DNA from: Auanema rhodensis
Taxonomy: Eukaryota; Animalia; Nematoda
DNA length: 64,000 nucleotides
Assembly (NCBI GenBank): GCA_964057225.1
Contig: OZ059896.1
Coordinates: 9,920,001 to 9,984,000 of the forward strand
Direction: 5' to 3'
Shown here in pieces: positions 6,001 through 53,500 of this stretch. The first letter of the stretch is position 1; the number at the start of each line of letters is the position of its first letter. The translations under genes and the position numbers were made by a program. Below the pieces are notes generated by a model, which had not been told where the DNA came from, did no database searches, and saw only the letters and a program-made list of their open reading frames with translations.

Positions 6001-6209
6001 AAGCTACGGGTAGACGAAAGAGAGCAACAACAGTGTTGATATGGTAATCAAGATGAGAACTATCTCCATATCCTATTCTCTTCTTTCATTGTAGCCATTG
6101 AGACCGGCTCATCCATCATGATGGGCATCAGAAAACTGAATAACCGATAACAATCTTTTTCTTAGTGATGTTGCTATAGTAGATATGGTGGGCACAACAT
6201 ACTTGTTGC

Positions 6210-6213
<4 letters not shown>

Positions 6214-6272
<59 letters not shown>
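6214..6272. repeat. (CT)n microsatellite
   Basis: Perfect CT run of about 29 units; source of the spurious ERER ORF 6109..6378. Confidence 0.95.
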
Positions 6273-6275
<3 letters not shown>

Positions 6276-6899
6276 CTCCCTCTCTCTTTTTATTTTCAAC
6301 TCTTTTTCTGTATTTCTGATTACAAACAAACATCTTTATCAAAAACATTTTTTCTTTAGTTTGTTTTGGTTCTCCCAATAAGTAAATTGTCGTAAAACTT
6401 TTTCAACAAAAATGAAAATTTCAACGCATTCTCTTCAACTTAGTCTTCAAAATTTCTTCAATTTTAAAAGGTTCATATCAATTTCTCTAAAAATCAAAGC
6501 ATTAAGATCAAATGTAAAAGACTAAATATACATAAATGAATCATTGAAATACTATTAGATGAATATATGAAGATAGAAGTAATGAAGCCAAACGAATTTG
6601 GTTTCAATTATCATCTAAAATTGCTCCTTGACAACTAAAATTTGACACCTAATGATCACATCTGGCATATATACTAATCTAAATTAGGTATAGATTATGA
6701 GAAATGGGGTAGTACCAATAATAGAAGATAGTTGTAATCTTATATTGCTGATAATATATTAAATGTTAAAAATTATATAATAATAATTTAGTTATTATTT
6801 ATAATTTGTCATAAATATTCGTCTTACATCAACAAGTTACTAATTTTGTGGAAACCTTGACTGTTGATATCATCATATCGTTTACTGTTGATTCTGGAG

Positions 6900-10101: not shown

Positions 10102-10132
<31 letters not shown>

Positions 10133-10160
10133 AAGAGAAAGAGAGGGAGAAAGAGAGAGA
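10102..10160. repeat. Imperfect (GA)n microsatellite
   Basis: Directly visible GA/GAAA run. Confidence 0.9.
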
Positions 10161-13100
10161 TCAAATCAAATCCATAATAGCTTCAACGTTTGGAAAACAG
10201 CATTCTGGTTAAATAAGAAAAAGAGCATAAGGTCAAATTTGTACATGACAAATGAATGATAAAACTAAAATTGAAAAGAAATCGTCAATCTATGTTTGAT
10301 TAGTTAACTAAACGTTATAATTTTATCAATAAAAACGCATTTTATAAAATAATTATAATGATATTTTATAAAATATGTTAAGTTATAGTTTTACTTTTAT
10401 ATTATTTTAAAAAATTTCTGAAGCTTATTGAAAAATATCTTAAATAAACGAAAATGATGAGCACAGTTGCTCGCGGTAATTTGACAAGCTGACATCATTA
10501 TTATTGCTCGGATGAGCAAGATAGATAGCTAGATTTCATACAGGTCAAGTTTAAACGAAAAAAAAGTTGTGTCATGAGCAAAATTCGAATTGATTGAGCT
10601 TATTGAACAGATAAATTCAATTTTCAACAATAGTTTCTACATGAATATTGAGATTGAATGTTGATACCTTTAAGCACGAGAGCATGTAAGATATGTGAAT
10701 AAGAATAATTAAAAAAACATTATATGAATTATATTATATACTATATACTATATACTAAATATATAATTAATTTACTATATTGACATTATAGGATATTGAA
10801 TAATTAAGATTAGCATTGTGACACCACAAAGCAAGTTGGCGAACAGGCTTCCGTTCCGAGTTGGACATTTACAATGCAGGCGGAACAGTTTTACCGGAAA
10901 ATATGAAAAGAGAAAAAAATAGATAAATGAGAGATTAGAAGAGAAATAAGGATTGCTAAGGTAAAATGGTCAATTAGAGAAAAAAAGATGAGACGATTAA
11001 CAAAGTAAAGATAGAGTTGTCAATAAATAGCCTAGGTAATTGACTCCTGCTGTCCTTCAGATTGTCTGGCGGTTTACTTTGAATGTTTCGTAACCGGCGA
11101 GGTCGATGTACTGGCCTTTCATCGTCGGTCACCACCATTGACGATTTTCAGAATGTTAGAAAACAGCATTTGTTAGTCTTGAGCAGTTTAGCTTGGTTCT
11201 AGATGTTTATACTGTCATCTGACACAACATAGTTCATTTGAAATTACTGTTTTGTTAAAATCAGTTGAGGAACTTGAAAATGAAATATATGAAACAAGAG
11301 AAACTTATCTTGTTCCAGAGGAAATTTGAAGCAGAAAAGGTATTAAGTGTCACCAAGTTTTAAAAGATCAGACCATTGTCTGGACAACTTGAAAATTTTG
11401 GTAAAAGTTTTAAAATTAGACTATCGAGATATGGAACAAAGAATAAAGCCAATTTTCTTATTATATAGTTGTATAAGTTCTCAAGAATAATCTAGTTTTT
11501 GCAATTTAAAAAACAAGAAACGAAACATATGCGTAGGTGAAAAGTAATTTTTTTGGTAAAAAAGCTGAGAGAAAGAAAACCGAAAACGCAAAAAGTTTCG
11601 AAAAATTCGTAAATCCGATGTATTCTCAATCTGAATTTAACAAAACAAAGAATAAAATATCAAAAACACACTTACAATCATTTGAACTTGAATAGTTAAT
11701 TGATAAAAAATTGGGATTATATTATGAAGCAAAGAGAATAATCGAACACATTTCTCGATGAGCTTTGTAACGAAATCCTCGACAAAGATTTTTTTATAAT
11801 CTTTATATTGACAGAATATACTCGGTATAATCGCTAAAAATCTTACATTCAAAGTTAATTATATAACTAATATAAGAATTAATTGAGAATAATTGATAAA
11901 ATAATTGCAGATCCTTTTTAAAAAAGATGATAAAAATCAATTAATAAAACAGAAGAATGAAATCAAAGCAAAGTTTCTTAACAAAAGCAGTTGCTTCTTG
12001 GTTTTCCTTCTGCAAGGATGATGTAAGGAGGGATAAGATGAGATTGAGAGAGAGGAAAAGAAAGAACGATGAACAAGATATATTGAAAGCTTCTAGATCA
12101 ATACACGATAGATAGTGATGGATACCTCCCACATGTTTCACACTGTTCATACCTTTTCTAGAATGAATTCCTTTGTATTTTTTCAATTTCAATTCTTTGT
12201 TAGTTTATTACTAATGTATTATCATAAAAATCTATTTCTAAGAAGCTTCGGAATAAAGATCATGTAAAAACTCTGTTTTTTTCAAGTCTGCTTATAGCTG
12301 ATCTTCATTGTTTTGAATATTTATTATAAAATGTATACTATATATAGTATTTACAAAGTTAAATAATAATATTTAAATGATGATGTTGTACTTCATTAAT
12401 AATAATTTTTTCTTTTTCTTTTCAAATTATTTTAAACTTTTCTCGTATTTATATATTTATAACTTTACATTATACTTATTTTATTAAGTATTTTTCAATT
12501 TTAATATTATTATTAAATAAATATTTTAAATTTTATATGTTATTATATATCTAGTTTTCTTATACATTTTGTTTTCTTAACAATTTATTTCTAGAGAGAT
12601 TTGATAAACTTTTTTTTTCTCAAATATCAATATAATACATAAGTTAAATGTGTATCTTATTACCGTAAAAGCTTAATATTGCAAAACATAAGTGAAGGAA
12701 AAAAAAAGTTTTTCTCATACAATTTTCTTGTTATAAAAGTTTAAAACAAAAAAACAAATTACGTAAAACTCTTCATACTAAATAATATATGAACAAAAAA
12801 AAATATCACTGGAATGTAATCAAGCTAAAAATCAAAAATAAAATACAAAATGATTCTATATTGTGAAAGTTCTTGGAACATAAACTACTAAAGATATAAA
12901 GAATATTGGTTCAAAGTGTTATGAGTATTGCATAATCACCCAATTCCTTTTTTTTCTATTTTCTTCTAAAACAAATTACATTTTGTAATTATTTTAGTAT
13001 CAAATGAATATTATAATAATACAAAATGTAATAAAAAAAATACAAATTAATGACAAATTGAAGATAAACATTCAATCAAAATTCAGCTCGTGTTTCTGAT

Positions 13101-19400: not shown

Positions 19401-22260
19401 TTGAACTAGGAAGAGAAACGAAGCTTTTGACTTTGAGCAATGAGAAGAATTAATGAAATATTTATGATATATAGCTAAACTAAACTTGTCGATTTAACAG
19501 AATAATTTCGCCTACTCTAACCATTAAGCTGAAGTTTGAAAGTGTAAGAGATAGAAAGAGAGAGAGAGAGAAAGCATGTGAGAGAGAATAAGCAAGAGAG
19601 AGAGAGACTGGAAAATACCTTAAAGCCTTTTTCCTTACTGCTTTTTCCTTTCTCGCTTTCCGACACAACGTCGCTATGCTCTTCTCGCAAACTCTTTTCT
19701 TTTCCTCTTTCTTCCTAATACTCATTCACGAAATAAAAATACTTTCTGTAGTATTACAGCAAACGTTCACAACCTTCTTGTTTCATAGACTTAATTGTCT
19801 TTTTTTTTCTCTTCAAGAAAAAGATAACATACATAGGTTGATCTCTGAAGCAAACCTTAGGAAAAAACTCAGGAAAAAGAACCGTGAAAAACAAAAATTA
19901 GCCAAAAATCCTTCATGCGTCAATTGCTATGTATAAATTTTAAAAAATGAGAAGTTTTTCTATCAAAGATTTATGAAATGGTGTATTTAATATGTTGTTT
20001 GAGGTGAGATCGTTTGTTGCCTGGGACAAAGTTGTCAAGAAACAGCATAGTTTCAAATGAGAATTCATAAATTATTGTATAATTTAGACTTCTAGTATGG
20101 TATCGTTTAGCAAATATTATATTTTTGTATATTCCAATAAATATTCTATTTATACTAGATGATTGTATAGTATATCCTATATAGGTTTCCGTAATAGTCA
20201 ACAAGCATACTACATAACAGTTGACATGTAAGCTTGAACTCATATTCAAAAAAAAAAAATTGCTGTGTTATATAAATAAAATTACTATAACATGAGTATA
20301 ATTATAAGAATATATTTATATAAAAAGCAAAAATTCTTTGCTTTCTAGGTTGAATTGAAAAAGCAACAAAACATGCGAAAGTCTGTGAATTCAACATGAT
20401 AGTTACGCAATACTTATCCACAATCCTTGTGAATATATATGATTTTTCGTTTGTTTTCAATTCAAATTTGTAGAAGCAATTCCAGAACTATATATATATA
20501 TATATATATGTATTTGTATATATGAACTAGTAAAAATATATATCAACTCTTTTATAATTGATTAATTATAATAACAAAAAAAAATGTTGTAATCTTATAT
20601 ACATATGAATATTTTTTTCATTTTTTTATTTCATAATTAAAAAAAAAAGAAAGAAATGACAAAATATTCAGCTTATTTGTAGTATCTTGTTACATCTGTT
20701 GACTTATTCTTATATAAAGAATCAGAAAAATATATGCAGAGTGCATGAATCAGAACAATAATTTTACCTTTTTTATTTCCAAAAATAAAGTTGCTGACGT
20801 AAAAGCTTTACCAATACTTTAAAGTAATATCTTTTCGTCTTCGAATTGTTTTTATTTTCTTCGAAATGGCCATTTAGGGCGATGTTTAAAGATTGTTTTT
20901 CTTTAACAGTCCCCAATGAATAATGAAAGATTAGAATGTCTTTCTTTTCTTTTTCTTTTTTTTTTGGGAAAAAGTTTAAAACAATTATTGAGAATGTATA
21001 AACTTAAATTTCAAATGAAATATTAACAATACTAATTATACTAATTATGTGTTTGTATACTATTACTTACTTCTCTATTCAATCTTAAAATAAGTAAATA
21101 GGATATTAAAAGCTATAAGGAAGTATGAAAGTTTGTTCTAATTTTCATTTCAATTTTCAAAGAAAAAAAAATTACATATCTATTCTTTTCAAATAAAATG
21201 AATAAATAATGATATGAATTATATTTTTCTTTTTGACATGGCTTAGTTCCATTTATAATTTTTGAAAAAAAAAAGATTATTTATAAAACACGTTTACATG
21301 AATATTATTTCTACTAATTAGGTTTAAAATAATTTTCCAAATATCCAATGAAGATGACGTTGACTGATTTAAATGCTTAGAATGAAAATGAAAGGGGTAG
21401 GACGACAAGTAGAGGACAAAATGGAAGCTAGATGTATATGTATATATTCTTATGAACGAATAACATTAACATGATAGTCTAATAGAATAAAAATTTTATA
21501 AAAAAATTGAATAAAAAAAAATTTTTTTTTTGTCTTCATGGTATGTTTGTTATATTATATTTGAAAATGAATCATTTTCATAAATACATACATATATTTC
21601 AAATAGAAATACTATTTGTATTAAAATCATCAGGAGAGATTGAAAAGAAATATATTTGTTATATTATGTTTACATATAATTATTTTATTAATTGTATTTA
21701 ATGTTTGGGAAAAATAATATTTTAAAATCATACTAACCTTCAATTTCTCTGCTTGGCGTACTTTCGTTCGAATAATGCATTTCACGTTCTCTCTGAAAAC
21801 GGGTAGCTAGATCAGATTGATGGGCTCGACGTAAAAATCGGCGAGGTATATTAGGATTCGACATAGGTTGTGATGGTGAGTATGATGACAGAGCTTGACC
21901 ATTATGAACTGCTCTAGATGCTGCAGTAGAGGGACTGCATGTTGCCATAGATGTTGATGTCATAACGCGTGAACGGACACGCTGCTGAAACTCTTTGGCA
22001 TCAGAGTTTCCGACTACCATCGTGCTATACAGATCTGGCTCGGATTGACGAGCGTACAGATGATAGCCTGATGGTGATACAACACTTGCAGCAGATAATA
22101 TGCGGTTTGGACGAGATGGCAAAGTTCGCCGATCTCGTTTAGGAGATATGTGGGGTGCCGTTGTAGATGGCACAGCTTGCGTTTGAATTCCAAGCATTGG
22201 TACAGACATTGGAGTTTGAGGAAGCGACATACGCCGTCGATTAATAGTAGTTGTTGACAT
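13464..22260 (-). CDS. STAC-like adaptor, short isoform with alternative first exon 22260-21739
   Basis: 174-codon Ser/Arg/Pro-rich ATG exon, preceded by a TTTTCTAG acceptor 15 nt upstream with an in-frame stop (trans-splice-like). Its phase-1 donor matches the acceptor at 17839. Confidence 0.75.
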
Positions 22261-25200
22261 TTTTAATCAAAATAACTAGAAAATAATTTTTGGAAGAAGT
22301 TTATAGGCTGAAGGGATAAAATGTGCAGACAATAAAGCCCTACAGATTGGTGATAAAATAATATTATAGAATGAATATGTATTGGTCTGTAGTATATGAC
22401 TTTGCAGAAGTACTGTGATCTTTGTAACAAAGTTCAGATGCCTTCGTGAACACAGCCAAGGGCTGTTGAGGGGGAAAACGAAGGCTGAGCCTGTCGAATG
22501 GAATGCTTGAGCTACCACCCTCACGCCAAGTAGGCGTGGCTAATCTTATACATGAAATGAAGGCGTTGAGAGTAAAGAGAGGATAGGGAAATTTCAGAAG
22601 AAAGTAATTGAGAGAGAGGAAGGGAGAGAGGGAGAGGGAATAAAACGAACAAGAGTAGAAAAGGCTAAGAATATATGTATTGGGCCAAATATGATTAGCT
22701 ATTCGTTAAAAAGGCAAAAATAATTGATATTCAAGCAGGGGAAGACGAGTTTTTTGTCTCCAAAGTTGTAGTTCCCTATTATCATTGAAGCTGTGTTAAA
22801 TTTTGATCGTTTAAACCTATTTTTGCAACTTGAAAATTTTCAAATTCAAATATATAATTTGAAGAATAGAGCATGAAAAATTGCTCTTAGTTATCACTTT
22901 AGATCATCTATGCTCCTGTGCGAATTTAAAGCAAAGATAAGTATATGGATAAGATTTAAAATTTTATTTCCAAAAATTATAAAATATTGGCAGTTTCCGG
23001 TGTTTTTTTCTTGCTTTTTCAGCAATTTAAGCCAATTATCGTCGTTTTCTTCTCTTACATATGTTAAAAAGAAAATTAGAAGTTAAGCATGTATGTATGT
23101 TCAAATGGCAACTCATTCATACAAGTTTTTTGAAGGAAACTTATACAAACCATCATTGAAAGTCGTTGAATAAGTTATGTGACCAAAGATTTTATATCTA
23201 ATCTTAAATTCCATATTAGAATCATATGGGTTAAAGTTAATGCTGAATGATTAGAAAGTTTTGGAGCTAAATATGTTGTAGAAGATCAACATCTTTCTGA
23301 TTTTCAGATAAGAATTTGAATTAGAATGCCCTCAAAGATTTCAAACATTGACTTTAAAGAATGAGATAATAACTAAATACGGAAAGATATCAAGCATTTC
23401 CTATTTCCATTGAACTTTTCATTTCCTGTCTTCATTCATCGTTCGTTCTTTTTCTCTTTGTCATTCAATCACATAACTTTTTTGCATTTGAAGAAGACAC
23501 TTTATCTCGATTATTGCGATCAATTGAGCTTTTCAAATAGTGGCTAAACGTTTAGTTTAAAGAAAAAATAATAAAATTCTTATAGTCACATATAGTATAC
23601 ATATATATTTTTCGTTTTTTTTTACATATATGTGCAAATATCTGAAGAAAAAATAAATTGAGCACAAGAAATATCCAAGATTACTGAACTCAGTAATTTT
23701 CTACCCGTCCTACGGATGTTTTTGTTTCCTCTGCTTTGGATGGGGGGGGGGAGGGGTAATACAAGGCTTCATTCGAATGTTGAAGGACCTGGATCAAATT
23801 AGAAAATTTTTGCTCCACATAAAAGAGGAAGACAACGAGAACTGGATGATCCCAAACGAATAGTTATACCGCATATGACAGATATGAAAAATATTCAAAT
23901 TGTGATCACAATATTTCATAGTCATGTAGCATATAAAGCGGTTTCTAATTGCTTTATTCGTCTCCATTTCGGCATTTTTTATTTGTTGCTGGCTACTTTG
24001 AGTTTTTAATGGACCAAAATTGAAAAATCATGCAAACGTCTAGAGCCAGCCTTTATTGCCATTTTGGACTTCTGGCCTTCTGATCCTTAGAGACTAATAG
24101 AGGACGGAGCGATTATGTTTTACGAGTATTCACTCAAAATGCTGAATAACATCAGAAGCTCAACTTGATCTGATGAAATCTTCGCCAGTATTCAGCTTGG
24201 AACAATTTGTGCTTCCTTTTTTTGCTGCGATTTCCCACACTTGTCTCATTAAAGCTTGGTACTCTCCCTTTTTCTCGAAGTCTGTTCATTAGGTTCATCT
24301 TTTAAACTTTAAAAAATTATATTTTTCTCTTTAAGTGTTTGAACAAAACTTTTTATATTTTATAGAAAGTATATATATATCTTCAAAATACTCTAATATA
24401 TATCATAATTCAATGTCCGTATGCAAATGCATATTTTCGTTTCAGTTTTCTATATTATTCCAAAAAAAAAATTGTAGCCAGTATAGTTCTTTCGAAGAAA
24501 CAAGATGATCATATAATCATCATCCCCTATATTAATTCCACCTCCGCATATTTTATCCAGGAATGTTTGATGTTCTATTTGGATCTTCGTACTCTCTCTC
24601 TCTTTCTTGTTCTCTCATTCTCTCCATCTCGCTCTTTCCCTCTTAATATCTGTATCTATTTCTCTTTCTGTTACTTCTTCTTTCTTTTCTTTTTTTTTCC
24701 ACTCACATATTTTTCTTATAATTCACCTTTCGGGCCTACACTTTAGCATTTCCTTCTATATCATCTGAACTTCTGTCTTTAATTTAAACTTTCATACGGC
24801 AAAATAACTAACCAACGTGCAATGTTGTTTGTTAGTTTCAAAGTGTATTTATAGAACCTTTTCAAGATTTTCAAGATGATAATGAATTTGAAAACAGATT
24901 TTGAGGAAAACTTTCAGTATAATTCCGAGAAGAGAAATTTTACAGGTTTTACAGATAAAGAATATTTTTTAAACCGTAGCTCCCATCATTGAGGCTTCTT
25001 CAAAAAAACAAAAAATTTTTTTGGTTCAAAAAGTACAAAAAATGGATGATGTAAGAAAAAAATTAGCCAAAAAAAAAAAAAAGAAATATACATATGCATT
25101 CATATTCATTCATATGCATATATACATATACATATATATATGTATATGTACATTCTCTCTGTGTAATATCAGATTTCTATATCAAGAATAGATTGTCATT

Positions 25201-29811: not shown

Positions 29812-32046
29812 AATTACTCAATTCACTGTGTTGAAGAGTTAGATGAAGATTTAGTAAGTAATACTAGAGAAATAGTTGAAATAGAACCGTTGATGAAGTA
29901 TTAGATACAACGCTATAGAAAGAAGCTTTACGCAACAGTTTGTTCGTTATTTAGTTTTTCTTTCTCGTCGTATAGAATGATGAAATCTGGGAAGAAGATT
30001 AGAATATGAGGCGAAGCTAGAAGGACTTCTTGCAGCAAGAAGATGAGACGTCTCAGAAATAGGAGCACGTGAATATCCTTGGTTTTAGAATTTTATCAAT
30101 CCTGCTCTTTTTCAATTTTTTTTTATAAATTGAAAGACCAAGAGATTGCAATATTCCAGAATAGCAGTGATTTCTGCAACTGCAAGGTTCCTTAGTTTCG
30201 TGAACAGCCTCACTGCTGTTTCGTCTTATTTCTTAAATCTCAACAGGCTTGTTGCTTCGTAAAGCGAAGGTGGAGTGAGGGTGGAGGACAACTGCTGTCA
30301 AGCTTTCCATACGCTTATTACTGACAACATACATTATCAGCCGTTCACAATTTCACATTTATGTTCTTTTGTTCTTTTCCTCATATTCTCCTTGATTTCA
30401 TATCTCTCTCTCATCATCTGCCTCATTTTTTAGATAACTCCCTCATCTTTTTTGCATCTTTCGGTTTCCATTTCTCTTTCTTTTCATGTGTTTCTCATTT
30501 AACTTATTGTCATTTCATTTATCCCACTCAGCACTCTCCAAATCACCTCAACGAAAAAACATTTTTTGCGACAGAAGAACGAAGTAAAGTAAAGAGAGAA
30601 GGGTTGTATATATTGTTTGGTTCAGTTAAACAAAATATTATAAAATACAACTATATGTTAGTTGAATGCTCTTCAAAAACTATACTATGAGATATATCTG
30701 ACTTCGTAACCTTCACACCTGACAACTGCCAGATGGGGCACACAGTTCAGAAGTTCAAAAAGTAACGAAAAGTTGCAAAGTGGCTTCAGTGATGGGCCTT
30801 GTTGTGACACTTCAATTATAAACAGTTCAAACATTCAAAACAAACGTACAATTTTGAAAACGAAAAAAAATAATAATTACGAGGTAAAATAGAATAGCAA
30901 CAGTATTTCTTTGAACTCAATGAATGTATCGTGTTATTAGGGAAGGAGAAAAACACATATTTTAAAAAAATATTATAAAAGGATAAATAAATGGACGAGT
31001 ACAGTCTTTCAGCGGTTCCTTATTCCGAGAAACAAATGTCAAAAATGGTCATTCATATGATGTTTTTGAACAATAATTTCTATAGCTATGAATTATAAAA
31101 AGATACAAAGATGTGTCATTATCTATTGATCCATTGATGAATAATTCTCTATAGTATACATACAATACATAGATCTTTATTTGCTTAAAATTATTATTTT
31201 TTTGACATCCATACTCGTTTTCACATTGCTTAGATAGCTTTTGTTAACATAAGCCTTTTTTAGATTTATCTGCATTTGTTACAAATAAATCTTTTTTTTT
31301 TCATCAACGTTATTGGCTCTTTCAAAATTGAAACATTGATATTAGATCTTTATTTATCTTCAATAGCACAATAGCAATTCATTTGTTATAAGATAATTGA
31401 AAATATCATACAATACATATGTATGATTAAAGAATAATTAATATTTTATAATTCTTAGAGTAACAGCTCTTTTTTACAAAAAAAAAACTTTAAGTCATTT
31501 GTACTCTTTCTTTACAAATGTTCTCTTGGTAGAGACATCCACATCGAAAGCTGGCCGCTATCATCACATCGTTGACAATTTCTGACAATGTTCTGTACTA
31601 AGACTAAGAAGACCCCTCTGGCCTCTTCTTGTCAATCATTGACCTCAGAACTATGTGGATATCGGATATACTTAGGTGCCGAATAGAAAAAATAAGAATA
31701 CGAAGTTTACAGCTTTCCATTGCACCAAATGTTTCTATAGGTCGTTGATGTTCGTAACTATATACATATAGTATAGTATATATATTATATATATATAGCA
31801 TTACATATGAAGTCAAATATCACAAATATGTAAACCTTAACCTTAACCTTATGCAACACTGAGCTGGTGATCAAAGTACTAAACTAACATATCTAAGACT
31901 CTAGAGCATCTGAATGATTCAATGTTTTGTAAAATTTGACATATATTTAATGAAAAATATAGCTTCATCTTTTATAGTTTTGATGTGTAATATAAAATCC
32001 AAGGATATAGGAATAATGTCTATTGGCTAAAGAGGGATATATATAG

Positions 32047-32089
32047 AGAGAGAGAAAAAGAAAAAAGAGAGAAAGAGGGAATGAGAAGA

Positions 32090-32143
<54 letters not shown>
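32047..32143. repeat. (GA)n-rich microsatellite
   Basis: Long GA run; source of the spurious SLSL ORF 32027..32278. Confidence 0.9.
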
Positions 32144-32147
<4 letters not shown>

Positions 32148-34164
32148 GGAGGAAAGAGCAAAGATATGTAACGCATATGTGTGTTCATAATATAAAGAGA
32201 ATCAAAGAATATAGAAAAGGAAGATGAGCATGAAATCAAATCCACATGGCTACAACTATGAAAATTAATTATATTCAATAAAATGTTAAAAAGATCAAAC
32301 TTTTAATACAAATCACGTCATAAATGACTACCTAACAATTATAAATAGATTGTAGTTATTAAATAAGACAAATATATCTTTTAGAATCAAAGTTTATAAA
32401 TAATTTCAATAAATGATTATGATTATAATACTTAAAATAAAATATATTCATCCTTTTCAATTTGTTTTGAAACCATTTTTATTTATAGAATATATTTAAA
32501 TCCTTTTGTATTTTAAGAGATTATCAATTTTCATTTCCGAATTGTATCATAAGATGAGCTTAGAGCATTTTTATAAAATAAACTTTTTTTGAAACTTTAT
32601 TCTTTCTCCATATGTTTTCCGACAAAAATTAAACGATTGATTAAATATAATATGAATTTATTGTTCTATTTACTGTGCAATTATAAGTGAAAACAAGAAA
32701 AATAAAAGATGTTATATTTTGAAGATCTATAGTTTTTTTCTAAATTCCATCAAAAATTAAACAACTGATATTTCTTCACATGCATGGAGATGATGAAAAA
32801 TACCGTTGTCGTAATTCTAATAAAAAAACCGGATTAAATGATGCAAAAGCTACTTCGTTATTAGATAATCTCATATATATCTATAATTCTCACATTGTAC
32901 TGAATAGCTAAACAAATTTCTCGGCAATGTTTTTCAACAATCTGAAGTAGTTTCTTTGACTTTAGTGACTGTCTTTGCTGAAAGAAAGAACAGCTGGGGG
33001 CAGTTCGTTCGATTAGCTTAATACAAAGACAAAGCTTCACACTTTGAAGGGAAAAGAGTCTTATCAAAGATATATATGAGCATTTCGCACTATTCATCGA
33101 CTATGTTAATTGGAAAGTTTTTCTAAACTTTGGAAAACAAAACATCATCATAAATAGAAAGTTTTTAAACATGTGAACCAAATATTTCATGATGTTATTA
33201 ATGTTGCCAATTCTAGTGGGAGAATAGTTCAATATCTCAATATTTTAGCCTAGAGATAGAATGCTAGAGAAACAACATAAGAGTCTTTGTATTTTTTATC
33301 GATTTAACGATAAAACATGTTTTTTCAGCAAAAAATAAATACGAAAGATAGGGAAGCTTTACAGCTTCAAAACCAAGGTAATCTTCCTTCCATACAACCA
33401 GAGATTTTCATGGATTTCTTAATTTCAAAACATAATTTCAACGATTTGAACTTAATTGCAGTGTTTGTATCAATGCAAAAAAGCTTTCACTATTCTTGTA
33501 GTTTTAGTTTCTATAGATTTCTTAATGATGAAGTTAGATCAATTACAAATAATTAGAAATAGAAGTATTATGTAAACTTGGATGAAAGAATAGTTAAAAG
33601 TAAAATATAACACAAGGATAAATAAAGAATTAATTCTTGTTTCCTAAAAGAGCATAATTTACATGAAAAAGTGAGATTATTGTAACTATTCTGAGAAATT
33701 TTGAGACAAATATTTGCAGAAAGTAGCTATCAGATAGCCGAAATTTATAAGAAGAAAACAAACCATCTAAGGCTATCCATTTTGAAATGGATTAAAAGAA
33801 AAGCTAATAAAATGTTGAAATCATGAAAGAAAGTTTTATAAATCTTTTCATGCTATTTTTATTTTGAATAATGGGCAACACAGAGGGATAAAATAGTTGA
33901 ATCAGAGAAAAAAATAGGTAAAACAGAAAAAATGTAGTGTATGAAATATTTTAAATTGTTATTAAAAGTATTTGTTATAATTCAGAAACGTTCCAGAAAG
34001 TTGACATACGTTGAATATTCAATAAGTGAAAAACTAAAATGATACATTTTTTTCCTAGTATATGAGCAGTTTTCTCAAGAGAAATTCAAGTACGAAAAAA
34101 AGGTAGTGAAAGCAAAGATCGCAATACGTTCGTAGAGGAATATACTTAATGGTTTCTGTGAGAG

Positions 34165-35356
34165 AAAATAAGAACCTAGTTAAGAAAATACATAATATTT
34201 CAGCTAAACGTGATGAAAAACTATTCATTCTTGTGTCTCAAGAAAATTTTCACAGTTGAACACAGCCGAACTGTGGTAATTAAGACATCAAAATGGTCAA
34301 AGTTCAGAAACTATTTGATAGTTGACAATAGAATATTTTATTTTTTATAATTATTAATGATTAATTATTTTATATATTTATTATTATTATTATTATTATA
34401 TAAATAATGGAATATAATTGTATTAATTTTATTAATAATGCTGTTGCTTGAAAAGCTCTGAAGTCCAGCTAATGATCAGTTGTATTCAAAATAAATAGTA
34501 TCCGAGGGTTTAGCCAATAAATACTGAGTCTCCACCCTCACTTATCAATCACTGATAAAGTAGCGATTTCATGACTTCGGCTGTCAGACCAATGACCAGT
34601 AGTAGGTCGCAGTTTTGCCGTCCACTTATAATTACACCGCTGTTCATTTAGTGCTCATATCCCATTTACTCGATCGTTTTTTGCTGCTCTCTCTACACTC
34701 ATCCTCTACATTACTTTCCTAATTAACTATTCTTTTTCTTCTCTATGTATATAATCCTTTGGCACCTTTATCTTTTTTCTCCCATATCTTTTCAGTTGTG
34801 GTTCTTCCACCACTCACATTTCTTTTTCGTTCACACGGGTCATTTTACGGATCCGAGTCTTACTACTTCCAGTTCAAACAAACGTATAAGATTATTTTTT
34901 CTTTCTTTAGTATATGTACATTTACCATTGTATTGTCATTGCCTTTCCTTATTAAATATTTTTTGATCATGTTGTACAACTATTTGAAAATATATCTTAT
35001 TTTGAAAAAGAGGTTATTAAAACTACACATAAAAGTAGTATAGAAATGAAGGATTATAATACCATTTTCAACATTTCAGTCATTTCAATACATTTTCATT
35101 CTCTGAAGTCACTATAAAGCCTCATTTAAATCACTTTTTTGAAAAAGTATGAAATGAGTCAATTTTTAAAAGCACTAAAAAGTGCTTATTTTCCATGATT
35201 TTTATGCATGTTCAACCAATTTTCTGTTGAGATGTTGATTTCAATTTTCATTTTCTATTTTCATGCCTAAATACTCGGAAATTGTGTCATTTTCACACTT
35301 TTTTGAAATTTCAAGGATGTCGATTTTAGAAAGAAAGTTGTAGTATCTCTGAAGAT
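34165..35356 (+). repeat. Left arm of ~1.19 kb inverted repeat (433 bp outer flank plus Maverick TIR from 34598)
   Basis: Reverse complement of 38761-39955. Differences seen: T35131 vs G38986, and (ATT)6 vs (ATT)7. Confidence 0.95.
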
Positions 35357-35407
35357 CTCTGAAGATAAAAATAATGTTCAATTTTACAATCTTTTATCTC
35401 ATTTTCG

Positions 35408-36183
35408 TCAGTCAGAACCGCAAAGCGAAGTATCCGGAGTAATTATTTGAAAAAGATCATCCAGAATTCGCTCTACGCGCATTAATGTTGCAGCTTCATC
35501 CTCGTTTGCCTCTGGACCTATAACACAAAACTAATCATTCATAATAAAACTAATCATTAAATAATTAAAGTCATTAATCAAAATGGAAAATATAAAAAAC
35601 ATTCTAAAAATATATTTAAAAAATACCGATATGAGTAACGTCAGCGAGAACTGAAGCAGCGTCGATCTGTCTATTCAGTCTCAACATGAAGGCGTCTCTC
35701 GAGGAACGCTAAACACAATATTTACTTATTAAATGATTATGTATACATTTTCGTATATTATATAATAGTCCATTATTATAATTTATTGTTAACGGAATAA
35801 TAAAAAGAAACATACTTGGTTAACTTCCAGAGTGAGAATTGTTGGATCGCGGTGACCCCGAACTAAATACAAATATTTTTGATAAGAACATTGTCTTTAC
35901 AGTTGTTATAAAAGAAAGCAAAAAGCTTAGAGGTTTTGCATACCTGATTGTCGCCCCAGTAAAACATTTATTTCCTCGATGTATTGCAAAATAGTGCTGC
36001 TGATGACATCCCATGTGTCCATATCCATTGCACCGTATCTAAGACATGTAATTAAATAATATAATAAAATAAAAATTAAAAGTAATTAGAAATCATATTC
36101 TCACCTTTCATTGAGATAAAGGCGGATCTCTCGATACTCCACTCTAGCCCAACGCGTTTGCGTGTCACTGCTGACCTTTTGCA
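35408..36183 (-). CDS. 5'-truncated five-exon cargo gene of unknown family inside the Maverick (~137 aa)
   Basis: Exons ~36183-36105, 36038-35944, 35862-35816, 35708-35627, 35517-35408. Four GT-AG AT-rich introns (66, 81, 107, 109 nt), all phase-compatible, no stop until TGA at 35408. Exons are visibly GC-richer than the introns. Confidence 0.8.
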
Positions 36184-36184
36184 G

Positions 36185-36953
36185 TTTGCATGGGTAGTAC
36201 CATTAAAAAAAAAGACAGGTAAAGAAACTGCAGATGCTTTGGAATCTATCTTTACAAAAAGTAAAAGAATACCAAAAAAGATGCAAACTGATAATGGTAA
36301 GGAATATTATAATAAAGAAATGAATAAACTTTTCAAAAAATTAGAAATTAATCACTTCTCAACTTATTCAGATAAGAAAGCTTCTATTATCAAAAGGTTT
36401 AATAGAACCTTGAAAGAAAAGATGTGGAAAATGTTTACTCATCAAGGAAATCATTAATGGACTCATCTTCGATGATTTACTCTGGGGTTATAATAATCAT
36501 TATCACACTTCAATAAAAATGACTCCAATAGAAGCTTCAAAAATAGAAAATGAAAGTATTGTCTACAATAATCTATTTCCCATAAAACATAATTTTGAGG
36601 AAATTCAAAAAAATTCTAAATTCAAAATAGGTGACACAGTCAGAATAACAAAATATAAAGCTATTTTTGACAAAGGTTATGTTCCGAATTGGATAACTGA
36701 GATGTTCAAAATTGCAAAAGTTCATATTGGTGAACCTGTGATGTACGAACTAAAAGATCTTGCAGATGAAGAAATCAAACGAAAGTTTTATGAAGAAGAA
36801 CTCACACTTTACAATAATATCAATGAAGAGTATAAAGTTGAGAAAGTGATAAAACATAGAAAATCTAATGGAGTAAAAGAAGTGTTTGTTAAGTGGTATG
36901 GATATCCGGAGAAATTTAACTCTTGGATAAAGGAAACGAATTTAAAGACATAA
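36185..36953 (+). pseudogene. Maverick retroviral-like integrase with C-terminal chromodomain, 5'-deleted and disabled
   Basis: FAWVVPLK, QTDNGKEY, ASIIKRFNRTLK (catalytic E appears as K). Stop at 36455, frameshift before DDLLWGYNNHYHTSIKMTP. Chromodomain YKVEKVI..VFVKWYGYPEKFNSWI. Confidence 0.93.
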
Positions 36954-37161
36954 GCATATCATACTCAATTATTAAAATAATGAAGTTTGATTTATCAAAT
37001 ACTGACAACCTTAACTCTATTTTCCTATTATCCTTGGCTTCAACAATATTTTCGCTTAAAATTAAGCAATAACATTTTTTTAAATAAAAATTTTTTCAAA
37101 CATTTTAAATACTTAGGTATAAATTTAAATATAATACTTCTAGGAAGCTTTTCACTTCTAG

Positions 37162-37905
37162 GAAGCTTTAGCTTACGCAATTAATGATTTCATCAAACCA
37201 AAGGTTCAAGGAGTCTCCGACTTCAGTGACTACAGTGTCAAAAATTATTACCCAGAAAGAAATAATAATCCTTTACTCCCCCAAAGTATAAGAGGATGTA
37301 TTATTGGAAAGAGTGGATGTGGAAAGACTAATTTACTTATGAATTCGCTATCAGAAGAATACCTTGATTATAATAATCTTTATATCTTTAGTACAACCTT
37401 ATTTCAGCCTTGTTATCAAGCTCTTATAAATGGTTTCGAAAATGGATTAAGTAAAAAAGAAATTAGAAAATGTTTTGGAAAACAAGACTTCATAATTGAA
37501 GAAAAGGAAAATCCCCAAAGAATTATTGAAGGGTATACATCTGACAAAATAGAAGATATTCCAGATCCTAGCTCAATTGATCCCAATAAGAAGACTCTAA
37601 TAATTTTTGATGATCTTTTATTAGAAAAAAAAATAAGATAGAACAATATTATACTAGAGGAAGACACTCTGGTGTAGATTGTTTGTACATTTCTCAAAAT
37701 TATATTAAGTTACCAAAGAATACAATTAGAGAAAATGCTAACTTCTTCATAATCTTTCAACAAGATAAGATGAATTTAGATTATATCTACAGGGATCATT
37801 GTAATTTCTTGAATTTACAAGAGAAGTTTGGTCTACGAAGTACAACTTTATAACAATTGATAAATCTAGTGATCTTGATGATGGAAGGTTTAGAAAATGT
37901 CTGAA
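37162..37905 (+). pseudogene. Maverick A32/FtsK-like DNA packaging ATPase, disabled
   Basis: Walker A IIGKSGCGKT (~37301-37330) and Walker B LIIFDD. Frameshift in the A-run at ~37625, then YYTRGRHSGVDCLYISQNY..LPKNTIRENAN. No in-frame ATG upstream of Walker A. Confidence 0.9.
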
Positions 37906-37996
37906 ATATTTTTTCATCATCTAACACTTCTAGGAAGTTTAGCTTACGCCTTATTTCAATTGTGACCATCTTTTCTAAAAGAAATCCTTAAAATTT

Positions 37997-38329
37997 TCAA
38001 TTTTGAATACTTTTTTGAATGTAAGCTATTTGTTCTTTTGGTATTCTTTTTTTAGTTACTTTAGAAATGTCTACCAATCCTCCAGATTTAGGAATTTTTG
38101 ATTCTACCAATCCTCCAGATTTAGGAATCTTCGATTCGAAATCATCATACTCCTTTTGGTTGCTCTGATTAGAATACGACTGGAATCTACCTTTAGTATC
38201 CCTGTTTTTATAACTTTCTGGAGTTTCAAAATTTCTAATATTTTTATTTAAATAATCTACACTACAACCAATTTCTCTGCAGAATTTTGTTTTCTTGATG
38301 TAAACATTGTAATGAATGATGGTATTCAC
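37997..38329 (-). CDS. Maverick-associated small basic ORF, possible HTH-like DNA-binding protein
   Basis: Open frame directly downstream of the protease. KTKFCREIGCSVDYLNKNI resembles an HTH. In-frame 33-bp duplication. No ATG, so possibly a fragment. Confidence 0.4.
   Translation of the reverse strand: MNTIIHYNVYIKKTKFCREIGCSVDYLNKNIRNFETPESYKNRDTKGRFQSYSNQSNQKEYDDFESKIPKSGGLVESKIPKSGGLVDISKVTKKRIPKEQIAYIQKSIQN
38071..38136. repeat. 33-bp tandem duplication (ESKIPKSGGLV x2)
   Basis: Units 38071-38103 and 38104-38136 differ at two synonymous positions. Confidence 0.9.
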
Positions 38330-38742
38330 ATTAGACCAATTACTGACTTTTGATAATCATAAGATTCTAATAATTTTAGAAAGAGTAGACAATAATAGCC
38401 ACAATGATGATTTCCGAATTCTTGAATTTGACATGTTGATAAAAGTATTCTATCTTTTTTATTTCTACTCTTGAGATATTGTTGAAGTTCTAGAGGAGGA
38501 TTTAATCCAAAAGAATCAAAATAATAAATATTTTCTTTGTTTTTAGAATAACAAACCCAATAAGTACCTTTATTATTAGAAGAATCTAGATTGAGAATAC
38601 CAATTTATTTTTCCTTAATTCCTTGTGGTGGCAAAGTGTCTCTCATAAAGACTCCTCTAAAATCCTAGATTCCCAATATTTCTGCTAATTCTATGAGTTC
38701 GAAGTTAGTAAGAGGTTTCAAAGTTTTATCTAGCTTCACCAT
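38326..38742 (-). pseudogene. Maverick adenain-like cysteine protease, disabled
   Basis: MVKLDK..FRGVFMRD.LP..ILNLDSSNNKGTYWV (catalytic H appears as Y)..YFDSFG..QIQ..CGYYC. Two in-frame stops. Confidence 0.9.
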
Positions 38743-38760
38743 TTATTGAGCTTATTTTTT

Positions 38761-39955
38761 ATCTTCAGAGATACTACAACTTTCTTTCTAAAATCGACAT
38801 CCTTGAAATTTCAAAAAAGTGTGAAAATGACACAATTTCCGAGTATTTAGGCATGAAAATAGAAAATGAAAATTGAAATCAACATCTCAACAGAAAATTG
38901 GTTGAACATGCATAAAAATCATGGAAAATAAGCACTTTTTAGTGCTTTTAAAAATTGACTCATTTCATACTTTTTCAAAAAAGTGGTTTAAATGAGGCTT
39001 TATAGTGACTTCAGAGAATGAAAATGTATTGAAATGACTGAAATGTTGAAAATGGTATTATAATCCTTCATTTCTATACTACTTTTATGTGTAGTTTTAA
39101 TAACCTCTTTTTCAAAATAAGATATATTTTCAAATAGTTGTACAACATGATCAAAAAATATTTAATAAGGAAAGGCAATGACAATACAATGGTAAATGTA
39201 CATATACTAAAGAAAGAAAAAATAATCTTATACGTTTGTTTGAACTGGAAGTAGTAAGACTCGGATCCGTAAAATGACCCGTGTGAACGAAAAAGAAATG
39301 TGAGTGGTGGAAGAACCACAACTGAAAAGATATGGGAGAAAAAAGATAAAGGTGCCAAAGGATTATATACATAGAGAAGAAAAAGAATAGTTAATTAGGA
39401 AAGTAATGTAGAGGATGAGTGTAGAGAGAGCAGCAAAAAACGATCGAGTAAATGGGATATGAGCACTAAATGAACAGCGGTGTAATTATAAGTGGACGGC
39501 AAAACTGCGACCTACTACTGGTCATTGGTCTGACAGCCGAAGTCATGAAATCGCTACTTTATCAGTGATTGATAAGTGAGGGTGGAGACTCAGTATTTAT
39601 TGGCTAAACCCTCGGATACTATTTATTTTGAATACAACTGATCATTAGCTGGACTTCAGAGCTTTTCAAGCAACAGCATTATTAATAAAATTAATACAAT
39701 TATATTCCATTATTTATATAATAATAATAATAATAATAATAAATATATAAAATAATTAATCATTAATAATTATAAAAAATAAAATATTCTATTGTCAACT
39801 ATCAAATAGTTTCTGAACTTTGACCATTTTGATGTCTTAATTACCACAGTTCGGCTGTGTTCAACTGTGAAAATTTTCTTGAGACACAAGAATGAATAGT
39901 TTTTCATCACGTTTAGCTGAAATATTATGTATTTTCTTAACTAGGTTCTTATTTT
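38761..39955 (-). repeat. Right arm of inverted repeat (TIR to 39519 plus 436 bp outer flank)
   Basis: Reverse complement of 34165-35356. Confidence 0.95.
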
Positions 39956-50523: not shown

Positions 50524-53500
50524 CTATACACTACTCATACTGGGTAGTTCCGGTGCAGGACGTTCAGATGAAAGAGATGTCCCTTTTCTTCCACTACGCT
50601 TATATTCCTCCTCTTTGGATATCAGTTCTGCTATAGCAGTCTGAAATTGGAGATATTTTGATACAGATCTGATATTTATTAATAGAATTATAGATTATGC
50701 CAGTGGTAACCATATTATATAGCATAATATGAAAAATAAGTTGTTTTTAAAAAAACATTTTCTATGCTTTGTATATAATACGTGTAAACAAATATTATCT
50801 ACATGAGAAGCCAAATAGTATTTTATAAATATAGAATTCGTACATACCTGAACTCGTTTAACATGACCTATCTTAACTATGCCTAAATCTTTAAAATCCG
50901 ATCTTTCCAGCATTCGCAGTTCTCGCCCTCTCACGTCGTTTTGCTTAAATTGGGTGGAATACTGAGAAAATCCCAGAGAATTGAGCCACGTGCATACTTC
51001 GTCCACGGACCAAGTTGATACTGAACATAAATCAGGCGATATTGAATAAATTTTTCTCATACCTGGTGTGCTAGGTGATCCTGTTCGCTTTTTCCATTGC
51101 TTGCTAAGCCAAGCAGCAAATCTGCTTCTTTTTTTACCACTAGACGGTTCGTTTGGCTGCAATTCACGCAAAGCCGCTTCTTCTCGGCTCATTTCTTGTC
51201 GAATACAACTCATAACATATCTCCAATGATCAGGCTCATCTCCCTGAAATAATACTACTACTAGTATATTTCCTTTTCCTCGCCTCAATCATATTGGCTA
51301 ATATTCTATTTAATATGATGTGTCACACATTCACATCTTTCTTCCCGCATTTAGAAATTAAAAATTAGAAAAAAAGTTTACATATTTAAAAAAAGATGGA
51401 ATTGAAGAAAAACTGGAAAATAGAACCGGAAAGCTGACTTACATGGACTTCAAAGGAGAAATGAGGGGCGGGGCCTAAGCGAGGCTGGTTGGCTGGAACT
51501 TTGCTTGGTTCGGACCAGCCAAAGTGATCCTCCAAATGGTCGGCTACCTGCTCTACCGCAGCTAGAACATCTTCTCTGGTAGCTCGACCTTCTGATATAC
51601 TTGTACTATCAGTCTGAAAATGTATTATTAAGTATACTTTATTTCTCTACGTTATTCAATTTTATTTTTGTTTGTATGAGAATGTATTTATGTTAAAGCT
51701 TAATCATGTGACAATTCGCGATTTTCTGTTTTGAGCTTTAAAAATAGAATTTAAGCACTTAAGGTCATACCTTTCTTTCATTTTTCATACCCAACTAACT
51801 CTTTAAAACTGTGAATATCTGTTTTGTTAACGTAACTAGGCATCTCATGCCCTGAAAAGAAGCTTTTTGCCATTTCCTGCAAGAGCAAATAAAGCGCTGT
51901 TAGGCCATTTTCCTTTATTTCTACATAAGGCAAAACCCAAAAGCAGCAGCAAGCTCAAAATGAAAAGAATTCTTAGATTAAATATAAAAAGGTAATAACT
52001 TTTGCTCCGGATGCAAACTTAATAATCTATTAAACCGAATTAAATGTTTGCTTACAGCTTCATCAAAAGGATCACTATGAAACATTTTCAGGCTGATTAA
52101 ACAGCTAATATATTTTGAAGATGCTCTGAGAACTGCTTGAGGTTTCAAGATTACTTATGTTTTAAAGTTTTCTCGTGTTGAGGCAGACACCATGACCCTA
52201 GAGAAAAATCTGAAACGAATACAGATTCTCAGTTGTGCTTCACTACTGTTTCCATTTGTTTTTTAAACCCAACGGGATTGGCAGACATGAAAAGGGTTAT
52301 TGAAAAAACAACTATTTGAATTTTTTTATCAATTTAAAAAAAAAACTTTGCTAAAATTTAACCCAAGATTGCTCATAACATTAAATTAAAACCATGATTT
52401 TCCTCCAACACTTTTATTCATACTCAATTTTCACTCTGGAGAAAAAAGTCAAACAAAAGACCGTAGATATCCCATGTCACCATACGCGTCTCGCTTTTTG
52501 ATGCTGATTGCAACATCTCCCGGGGAAAGTTTGTTGAATCCTACGCTTTGGATAGAGGCATCTATTCACTTAGGTTTCAAGCTAGAATTCACTTTCGCTA
52601 CAAAGAGAAAAAACAACACATTGAAATTTAGCAGCTTTTTTCCTCAGTTAGAAGGGTGAAAGTGGTTGTGTCGTCAGCAACTACTGGCACAAGGTCTAAC
52701 TTCCCCACGACACACGCACATGCTCAGAAGTCCCGGACTCAATTTGCAATTCATCATAACGCAAATTTCCGATGAAGAATAATAATGAGCCGACCGGGCT
52801 TGGTCCCCTAATTTCCTCTTCTTTGACGATATGCTCATACTCAGAAGAATACCCGACTTTTCTTTCCAAGTTAATATCAAATTTCAGAACTAATAACCTG
52901 GCTATTGCATTACTCACATTCAAATAAACTTTCTATTATGACAATCTTAACAATAATATTCAGAAAAAAACAAGGAATATATTTTCTCATTAAAACTTTG
53001 TTTCAGCAGCACTCTGAATTCACTATTATTTCACTAGGCCTGGGTCTTCTAGCAAGAATGTTCCGATGAATACTCCATAACCACCAATGCTCGTGTGATT
53101 GTTTACGAAGAGTATGCATATCCCTTTATCCGACAATCACCTGCAGTCGTTTACGCTGCTTCCTCAAGAACGAGAGATCAAAAAACCATGGTTTGTTATC
53201 CTTACTCAACTAACTTCACTACAATATAAACCTGCATTTTAAACTATAAAATAAATTAAATTTTCAAAAATATAACTAAATAAAGTGTGCTTCTCAAATT
53301 CATCATTTAAATTCGTTTTTAAGCAAAGTCAAGAGAGCGCCTATCAATACGGCTCGCATCCTCGTGGGAGTAGAGGTAATTCTGAGCCTAAGCTTTCATA
53401 TTGCTATGTGGATTAGCGCAAAGAAAGGTCATTGGATTCATATAGTCTTAGCCATCATAGTCGGCATTAATCTTCTGGCTGCTGCACGGTTACTTACACG

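Follow-up and report, generated by a model that had tools for sequence, protein, structure and literature searches.

A probable 5'-truncated cargo-gene relic in a reduced Maverick element of the nematode Auanema rhodensis

A 64-kb stretch of Auanema rhodensis genomic DNA (hereafter the window, which is the whole stretch that was analysed) was examined for the organisation of a transposable element and of a spliced open frame within it. The element occupies 34165-39955 of the window, has long inverted repeats at both ends and includes matches to an integrase, an ATPase and a protease, and was classified as a 5.8-kb deletion derivative of a Maverick/Polinton. Its left (34165-35356; 1192 nt) and right (38761-39955; 1195 nt) terminal inverted repeat arms were found to differ by a single mismatch and a single gap in 1195 nt (99.7% identity) and to be separated by an interval of 3.4 kb. 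The 5-6 nt that flank the arm homology differ between its two ends and show no target-site duplication, and the true termini may lie a few bases off. Pfam analysis of the left-arm ORFs was blank. Within each arm is a GC-richer island (GC 0.40-0.53; 34520-34880, mirrored at 39260-39620) that is devoid of recognisable coding content and of Pfam matches, and a (TAT)n/(ATA)n microsatellite is located near the outer part of both arms (34334-34399 and 39718-39786). A 10-bp tandem duplication at 35347-35366 marks exactly the inner edge of the left arm; it is absent from the right arm and is followed by ~16 nt of weak arm-like similarity.

Outside of the element, the window was found to include an open frame of 197 codons at 50698-51288 (minus strand) that encodes a SAM domain (SAM_1, E=1.3e-14) and probably represents a host-gene exon; more open frames are present on the same strand up to 57082. 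A GC-rich cluster of minus-strand open frames at 21736-22705 (177, 87 and 113 codons; GC 0.41-0.47) had no Pfam match, and the largest frame of this cluster has a CpG observed/expected ratio (o/e) of 1.14. Most of the remaining inverted-repeat pairs in the window trace to long (CT)n/(GA)n microsatellites at 6197-6307, 10102-10164 and 32029-32169. Nothing was found when the window was searched against Rfam.

Between the arms, remnants of Maverick core genes were detected. An integrase remnant, with the rve core and a C-terminal chromodomain, spans 36182-36947 on the plus strand in two pieces and two frames (at least one frameshift), and its N-terminal part is gone. The rve match in Pfam is partial and under cut-off (E=1.9e-6, profile positions 36-94 of 102), with Chromo matched at E=1.4e-9. 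The integrase has 34 relatives and is 79% identical to a protein of Caenorhabditis angaria, 63% identical to C. briggsae CBG24082 (rve plus chromo) and 82% identical to an integrase of Heterorhabditis bacteriophora. A nearly full-length A32/FtsK-type packaging ATPase lies at 37216-37918, also on the plus strand, in three pieces and three frames (at least two frameshifts). It was matched to Pox_A32 in Pfam (E=4.4e-4) and, at a best E value of 3.8e-70 in the protein search, to PF04665 proteins, with 72-75% identity to the ~250-aa members of C. remanei, C. briggsae and C. brenneri and 83% identity to proteins from unannotated assemblies. On the minus strand, a partial match to an adenovirus-type cysteine protease (Peptidase_C5, profile positions 22-116 of 179) was detected at 38329-38604; this match is weak, with E=0.0048 and 17 bits vs. 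a curated cut-off of 21.3. An unassigned open frame at 38000-38356 adjoins the protease match on the same strand and includes a 33-nt tandem repeat (38070-38137; 2.1 copies, 94% matches).

Other genes of a complete Maverick were missing. No Pfam match to a protein-primed type-B DNA polymerase was obtained for the open frames of at least 45 aa in the element, and there is no room for this gene since the protease match is separated from the right arm by only ~150 nt. Major and minor capsid genes were likewise not found, and the region from 35357 to 38760 has no free coding space of the required size. Further copies of the integrase or ATPase were not present in the 64-kb window. The element is a nematode Maverick in kind, but a small, broken and internally deleted derivative. 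By contrast to its near-identical arms, the core genes at 36182-38604 have lost sequence in two large deletions and carry three or more frameshifts, which suggests that the element was copied in reduced form or that the arms were homogenised. Given near-identical arms around core genes with several breaks, the element had probably been reduced before it was copied, and the breaks would predate the last copying event.

Between the left arm and the integrase remnant, the minus strand from 36178 to 35408 was found to encode five exons and four GT..AG introns, with one frame that stays open to a TGA stop codon when the exons are translated one by one. The chain starts with a 5'-truncated exon 1 (36105-36178, with its donor GT at 36103-36104), continues through exon 2 (35944-36038), exon 3 (35816-35862; 15 aa) and exon 4 (35627-35708), and terminates in exon 5 (35408-35517) with the TGA at 35408-35410. 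The four introns measure 66, 81, 107 and 109 nt and are in phases 2, 1, 0 and 1; all of them start with GT and end with TAG. The exons sum to 408 nt, which corresponds to 135 codons and the stop. Downstream of the stop codon is a short unique stretch (35357-35407, minus strand) that contains GATAAA, a variant of the poly(A) signal, at 35393-35398, 12 nt after the TGA, and that reaches into the 10-bp duplication at the arm edge. The distance from the stop codon to the end of the left arm is thus ~50 nt, or ~25 nt when the weak continued arm similarity is counted.

A sequence-only reading of this locus had proposed that a Maverick carries five minus-strand exons, spliced in phase, between its left terminal inverted repeat and its integrase, and that the ORF track misses them. 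The exons proved to be as described: each one, translated in its own frame, yields the corresponding part of the peptide given in that reading, the set at 35408-36178 is flanked by the left arm, which ends at 35356, and by the integrase, which starts at 36182, and no ORF of at least 100 aa is listed there. The carrier was named correctly as to kind, based on its integrase, ATPase and inverted arms, but is a 5.8-kb broken derivative rather than a full Maverick. The upstream limit, which had been set at 36183, was corrected to 36178, the position of the first whole codon.

For an estimate of how readily such a chain may arise by chance, the nine segments (exons and introns) were shuffled separately in 2000 shuffles, and each splice boundary was left free by ±10 nt. 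By this approach, an open GT-AG chain was obtained in 0 of 2000 shuffles. The genuine sequence yielded a single open-chain solution, both at ±0 nt and at ±5 nt of boundary freedom. GC content by codon position in the exon chain was 0.56/0.39/0.45, a coding-like pattern. Base composition also differed sharply between exons (GC 42-50%, 26 CpG) and introns (GC 15-26%, 2 CpG), and the edges of this contrast coincide with the splice sites. Taken together, these results confirm that the five-exon chain, spliced in phase, is genuine. Neither the exons nor the inner 3.4 kb of the element were found a second time within the 64-kb window.

The exons were also distinct in composition from the rest of the element. 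When pooled, they have a GC of 0.47, a CpG o/e of 1.18 and a GC content at third codon positions (GC3) of 0.45, compared to 0.27-0.30, 0.36-0.41 and 0.21-0.26, respectively, for the core-gene remnants. A Maverick core gene was therefore rejected as the identity of the exons, as those of this element have no introns and are rich in AT and poor in CpG. For long open frames of host type in the window, GC3 is 0.25-0.42 and, in two such frames, CpG o/e is 1.03-1.14. The exon GC3 is above that of every host-type open frame of the window. A composition that equals or exceeds the host maximum hints at an origin in a genome richer in GC, but a chain of only 135 codons allows nothing firmer.

At its 5' side the exon chain is cut, and so is the integrase. 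Upstream of the first whole codon at 36178, the frame of the chain stays open to 36202 and then meets an in-frame stop at 36203-36205, with no ATG between, and the sequence from 36182 to 36202 is that of the integrase in reverse direction. Integrase homology begins abruptly at 36182-36185, immediately next to exon 1 on the opposite strand. The alignment to integrase relatives has scores of 29-51 and 5-9 identities in the 11 columns to the right of this point; the 1-12 columns to its left give -2 to 9, which is noise. In the relatives, which reach 313 aa, the aligned part begins no earlier than about residue 59-101, in agreement with an rve match that starts at profile position 36. The missing N-terminal part of the integrase was not matched on the plus strand under the exons. 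A nested insertion that split the integrase was rejected, since the missing part is absent from the far side of the exons. Thus, the exon chain and the integrase diverge on opposite strands and are both without a 5' end at one and the same junction, and one deletion across a divergent gene pair would explain both truncations.

The position of the exons corresponds to a region that has been described in nematode Mavericks. Between the left terminal inverted repeat and the integrase, these elements have a cargo region of 2-5 kb that is high in GC and includes introns (10.1101/2022.07.12.499685), and which Widen and colleagues read as host-derived cargo that is swapped between species (10.1101/2022.07.12.499685). 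Nematode Maverick core genes are intronless and AT-rich, the GC content of the elements is under that of the host, and most copies are incomplete or pseudogenised (10.1101/2022.07.12.499685). The exon set at 35408-36178, bounded by the left-arm end and the start of the integrase, lies precisely in this cargo slot, and it agrees with the cargo description in having a GC above that of the core genes (0.47 vs. 0.27-0.30) and four GT..AG introns.

Based on these results, we consider it likely, at a probability of roughly 0.65, that the five exons represent the 3' portion of a spliced cargo gene, truncated at its 5' end, that was carried by a Maverick now reduced and non-autonomous. In the parent Maverick, the slot that separates the integrase from the left inverted repeat would have contained a complete cargo gene, with transcription directed away from the integrase. 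The 5' parts of both genes, together with the intergenic region that they shared, would then have been lost in an internal deletion, and the remainder would be a 0.8-kb tail (last five exons, stop and possible poly(A) signal) placed directly against a headless integrase. A second deletion would have taken everything past the protease, and the outcome would be the 5.8-kb non-autonomous mini-Maverick. As the window holds a single copy, we infer the fuller parent gene rather than see it. Having neither a start codon nor its own promoter, the remnant is most likely a non-functional relic. The hidden gene of the sequence-only reading is not an intact one, as the chain is without a start codon and upstream part and is cut at the junction where the integrase loses its N-terminus. 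That reading was right in what it observed and partly supported in how it was interpreted. The architecture is already described as an intron-bearing, GC-rich slot (10.1101/2022.07.12.499685).

The family identity of the 135-residue tail was addressed by searches with single exons. Exons 1, 2, 4 and 5 gave no Pfam match up to E=10 and, except for one chance match at E=1.6, no match among PDB sequences. Exon 2 had 0 matches at E<=0.001 among 1.84 billion representative proteins, a library that should cover annotated nematode proteomes. Exon 5, used as a 40-aa stop-free stretch in which five intron-encoded residues were added, gave no candidate in a 5.8-billion-protein library; this search covers proteins of 22-70 aa, and its blank is silent on longer kin. 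No relative of any exon was found with these single-exon queries. The queries are 24-40 residues in length, for which detection is estimated only above ~60% identity, and by this estimate the blanks rule out very close annotated kin and little else. The earlier statement that the protein is without protease or kinase motifs holds at the exon level only (Pfam blanks for exons 1, 2, 4 and 5), and the earlier claim of a new cargo family was overstated, since the analysis backs it only with blanks from short single-exon queries.

Two cargo families have been reported as preferentially carried by nematode Mavericks, the HtrA-like serine proteases (wosp/wasp) and the krma kinases (10.1101/2022.07.12.499685). 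The krma proteins are ~430 aa and have an N-terminal ubiquitin-like fold, with no other recognisable domain and no kinase domain that is recognisable to InterPro (10.1101/2022.07.12.499685); their fold is like that of HipA/CtkA-type kinases, which are mostly helical bacterial enzymes, and the catalytic residues are conserved (10.1101/2022.07.12.499685). It is possible, though we give it well under an even chance, that the tail is the C-terminal part of a member of one of these families, krma or, less likely, wosp/wasp. This identity is compatible with the relic explanation and is in line with the preference reported for these two families in the slot (10.1101/2022.07.12.499685). Blanks in Pfam are expected for a krma protein without an InterPro-recognisable kinase domain, and with only the last 135 residues left, N-terminal hallmarks would be gone regardless; it is a realistic possibility that the tail stems from the helical C-terminal region of such a kinase. 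The failure of exon 2 to match any of the 1.84 billion proteins argues weakly against a known family, as a query of 31 residues is estimated to need ~60-65% identity. For wosp/wasp, no motif of the serine-protease type is visible in the exon translations and no protease family was matched by any searched exon, but the catalytic domain could sit in the lost part.

Another identity considered, to which we assign the same rather low likelihood, is that the tail belongs to a third, as yet undescribed family of intron-bearing genes that are carried and exchanged between nematodes by Mavericks. A host gene of an ordinary kind that was captured by the element is a further candidate. If so, the exon GC3 of 0.45 would mark an origin in another, more GC-rich species.

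An unlikely alternative to the relic of a cargo gene is that a piece of a host gene (its last five exons) was copied into the break at the internal deletion of the element, as a one-off filler that was never the cargo of a working Maverick. The fragment is indeed cut at both ends, within an exon at its 5' side and ~25-50 nt past the stop at its 3' side, and its composition is at or above that of host-type frames (CpG o/e of 1.18 vs. 1.03-1.14 for two frames; GC3 of 0.45 vs. 0.25-0.42). By contrast, the position is exactly that of the published cargo slot (10.1101/2022.07.12.499685), the 3' end is orderly (the last exon is complete, and GATAAA follows the stop by 12 nt), and the parent copy that a filler would have come from is absent from the 64-kb window. 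A single deletion in a divergent gene pair, moreover, accounts for both truncations without an extra event.

Still less probable, and in our view improbable outright, is a working small gene, which would be transcribed, e.g. from within the integrase remnant or with trans-splicing at an AG before exon 1, and would use the earliest in-frame ATG, located in exon 2, to encode ~107 residues. Such a gene would be consistent with the intact frame of 135 codons, the four good introns and the possible poly(A) signal, and with the near-identical repeats that point to a young copy. A young copy, however, stays open-framed without selection. Exon 1 has no ATG, an out-of-frame ATG and short open frame are located just upstream, and no promoter region is recognisable, since the upstream DNA is integrase sequence in reverse. 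The weakest explanation, that the exon chain is an artefact of GT and AG dinucleotides picked in AT-rich sequence, has in its favour that these dinucleotides are common and that the boundaries were originally picked by eye, but is refuted, as far as sequence statistics go, by the failure of all 2000 shuffles despite their ±10 nt of freedom, by a GC and CpG contrast that matches the splice sites base for base, and by the coding-like GC of the codon positions.

With the exons taken as the relic of a cargo gene, the find represents a known phenomenon, and any novelty rests solely on family identity. Mavericks are the single documented vehicle for gene transfer between distant nematodes, with two cargo families described so far; a further family, if true, would extend the list of genes that they move. 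A reduced, cargo-bearing element of 5.8 kb with near-identical repeats would also show that pieces of cargo ride on non-autonomous derivatives. The copy described here is most likely a relic, and its worth is as a pointer toward a complete gene in fuller copies.

In comparison to known systems, the locus is most similar to the cargo region of nematode Mavericks, which it resembles in position, in a GC above that of the AT-rich, intronless core genes, and in its introns; the ATPase and integrase are, in addition, 63-83% identical to Maverick-type proteins of Caenorhabditis and Heterorhabditis. It differs from the published slot in its size (0.8 kb vs. 2-5 kb) and from published cargo in the loss of the 5' part of the gene, and the element is unlike complete Mavericks in that the polymerase and capsid genes are missing. 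Slot architecture of this type is already described and is not new. Cut-and-paste DNA transposons give rise to internally deleted, non-autonomous derivatives, and the element is similar to these in that near-identical terminal repeats are kept while the interior is deleted and the coding capacity for its own movement is gone. Unlike ordinary derivatives of this type, its parent was a virus-like Maverick and a piece of cargo is still aboard. The presence of a host-type, intron-bearing gene fragment within terminal inverted repeats is also reminiscent of Pack-MULEs, of Helitrons and of the MULE capture of msft-1 in C. briggsae. By contrast to capture by Pack-MULEs or Helitrons, proteins of MULEs or Helitrons are absent, the integrase of the carrier is of the retroviral type, and the fragment is more simply explained by a deletion in a once-complete cargo gene.
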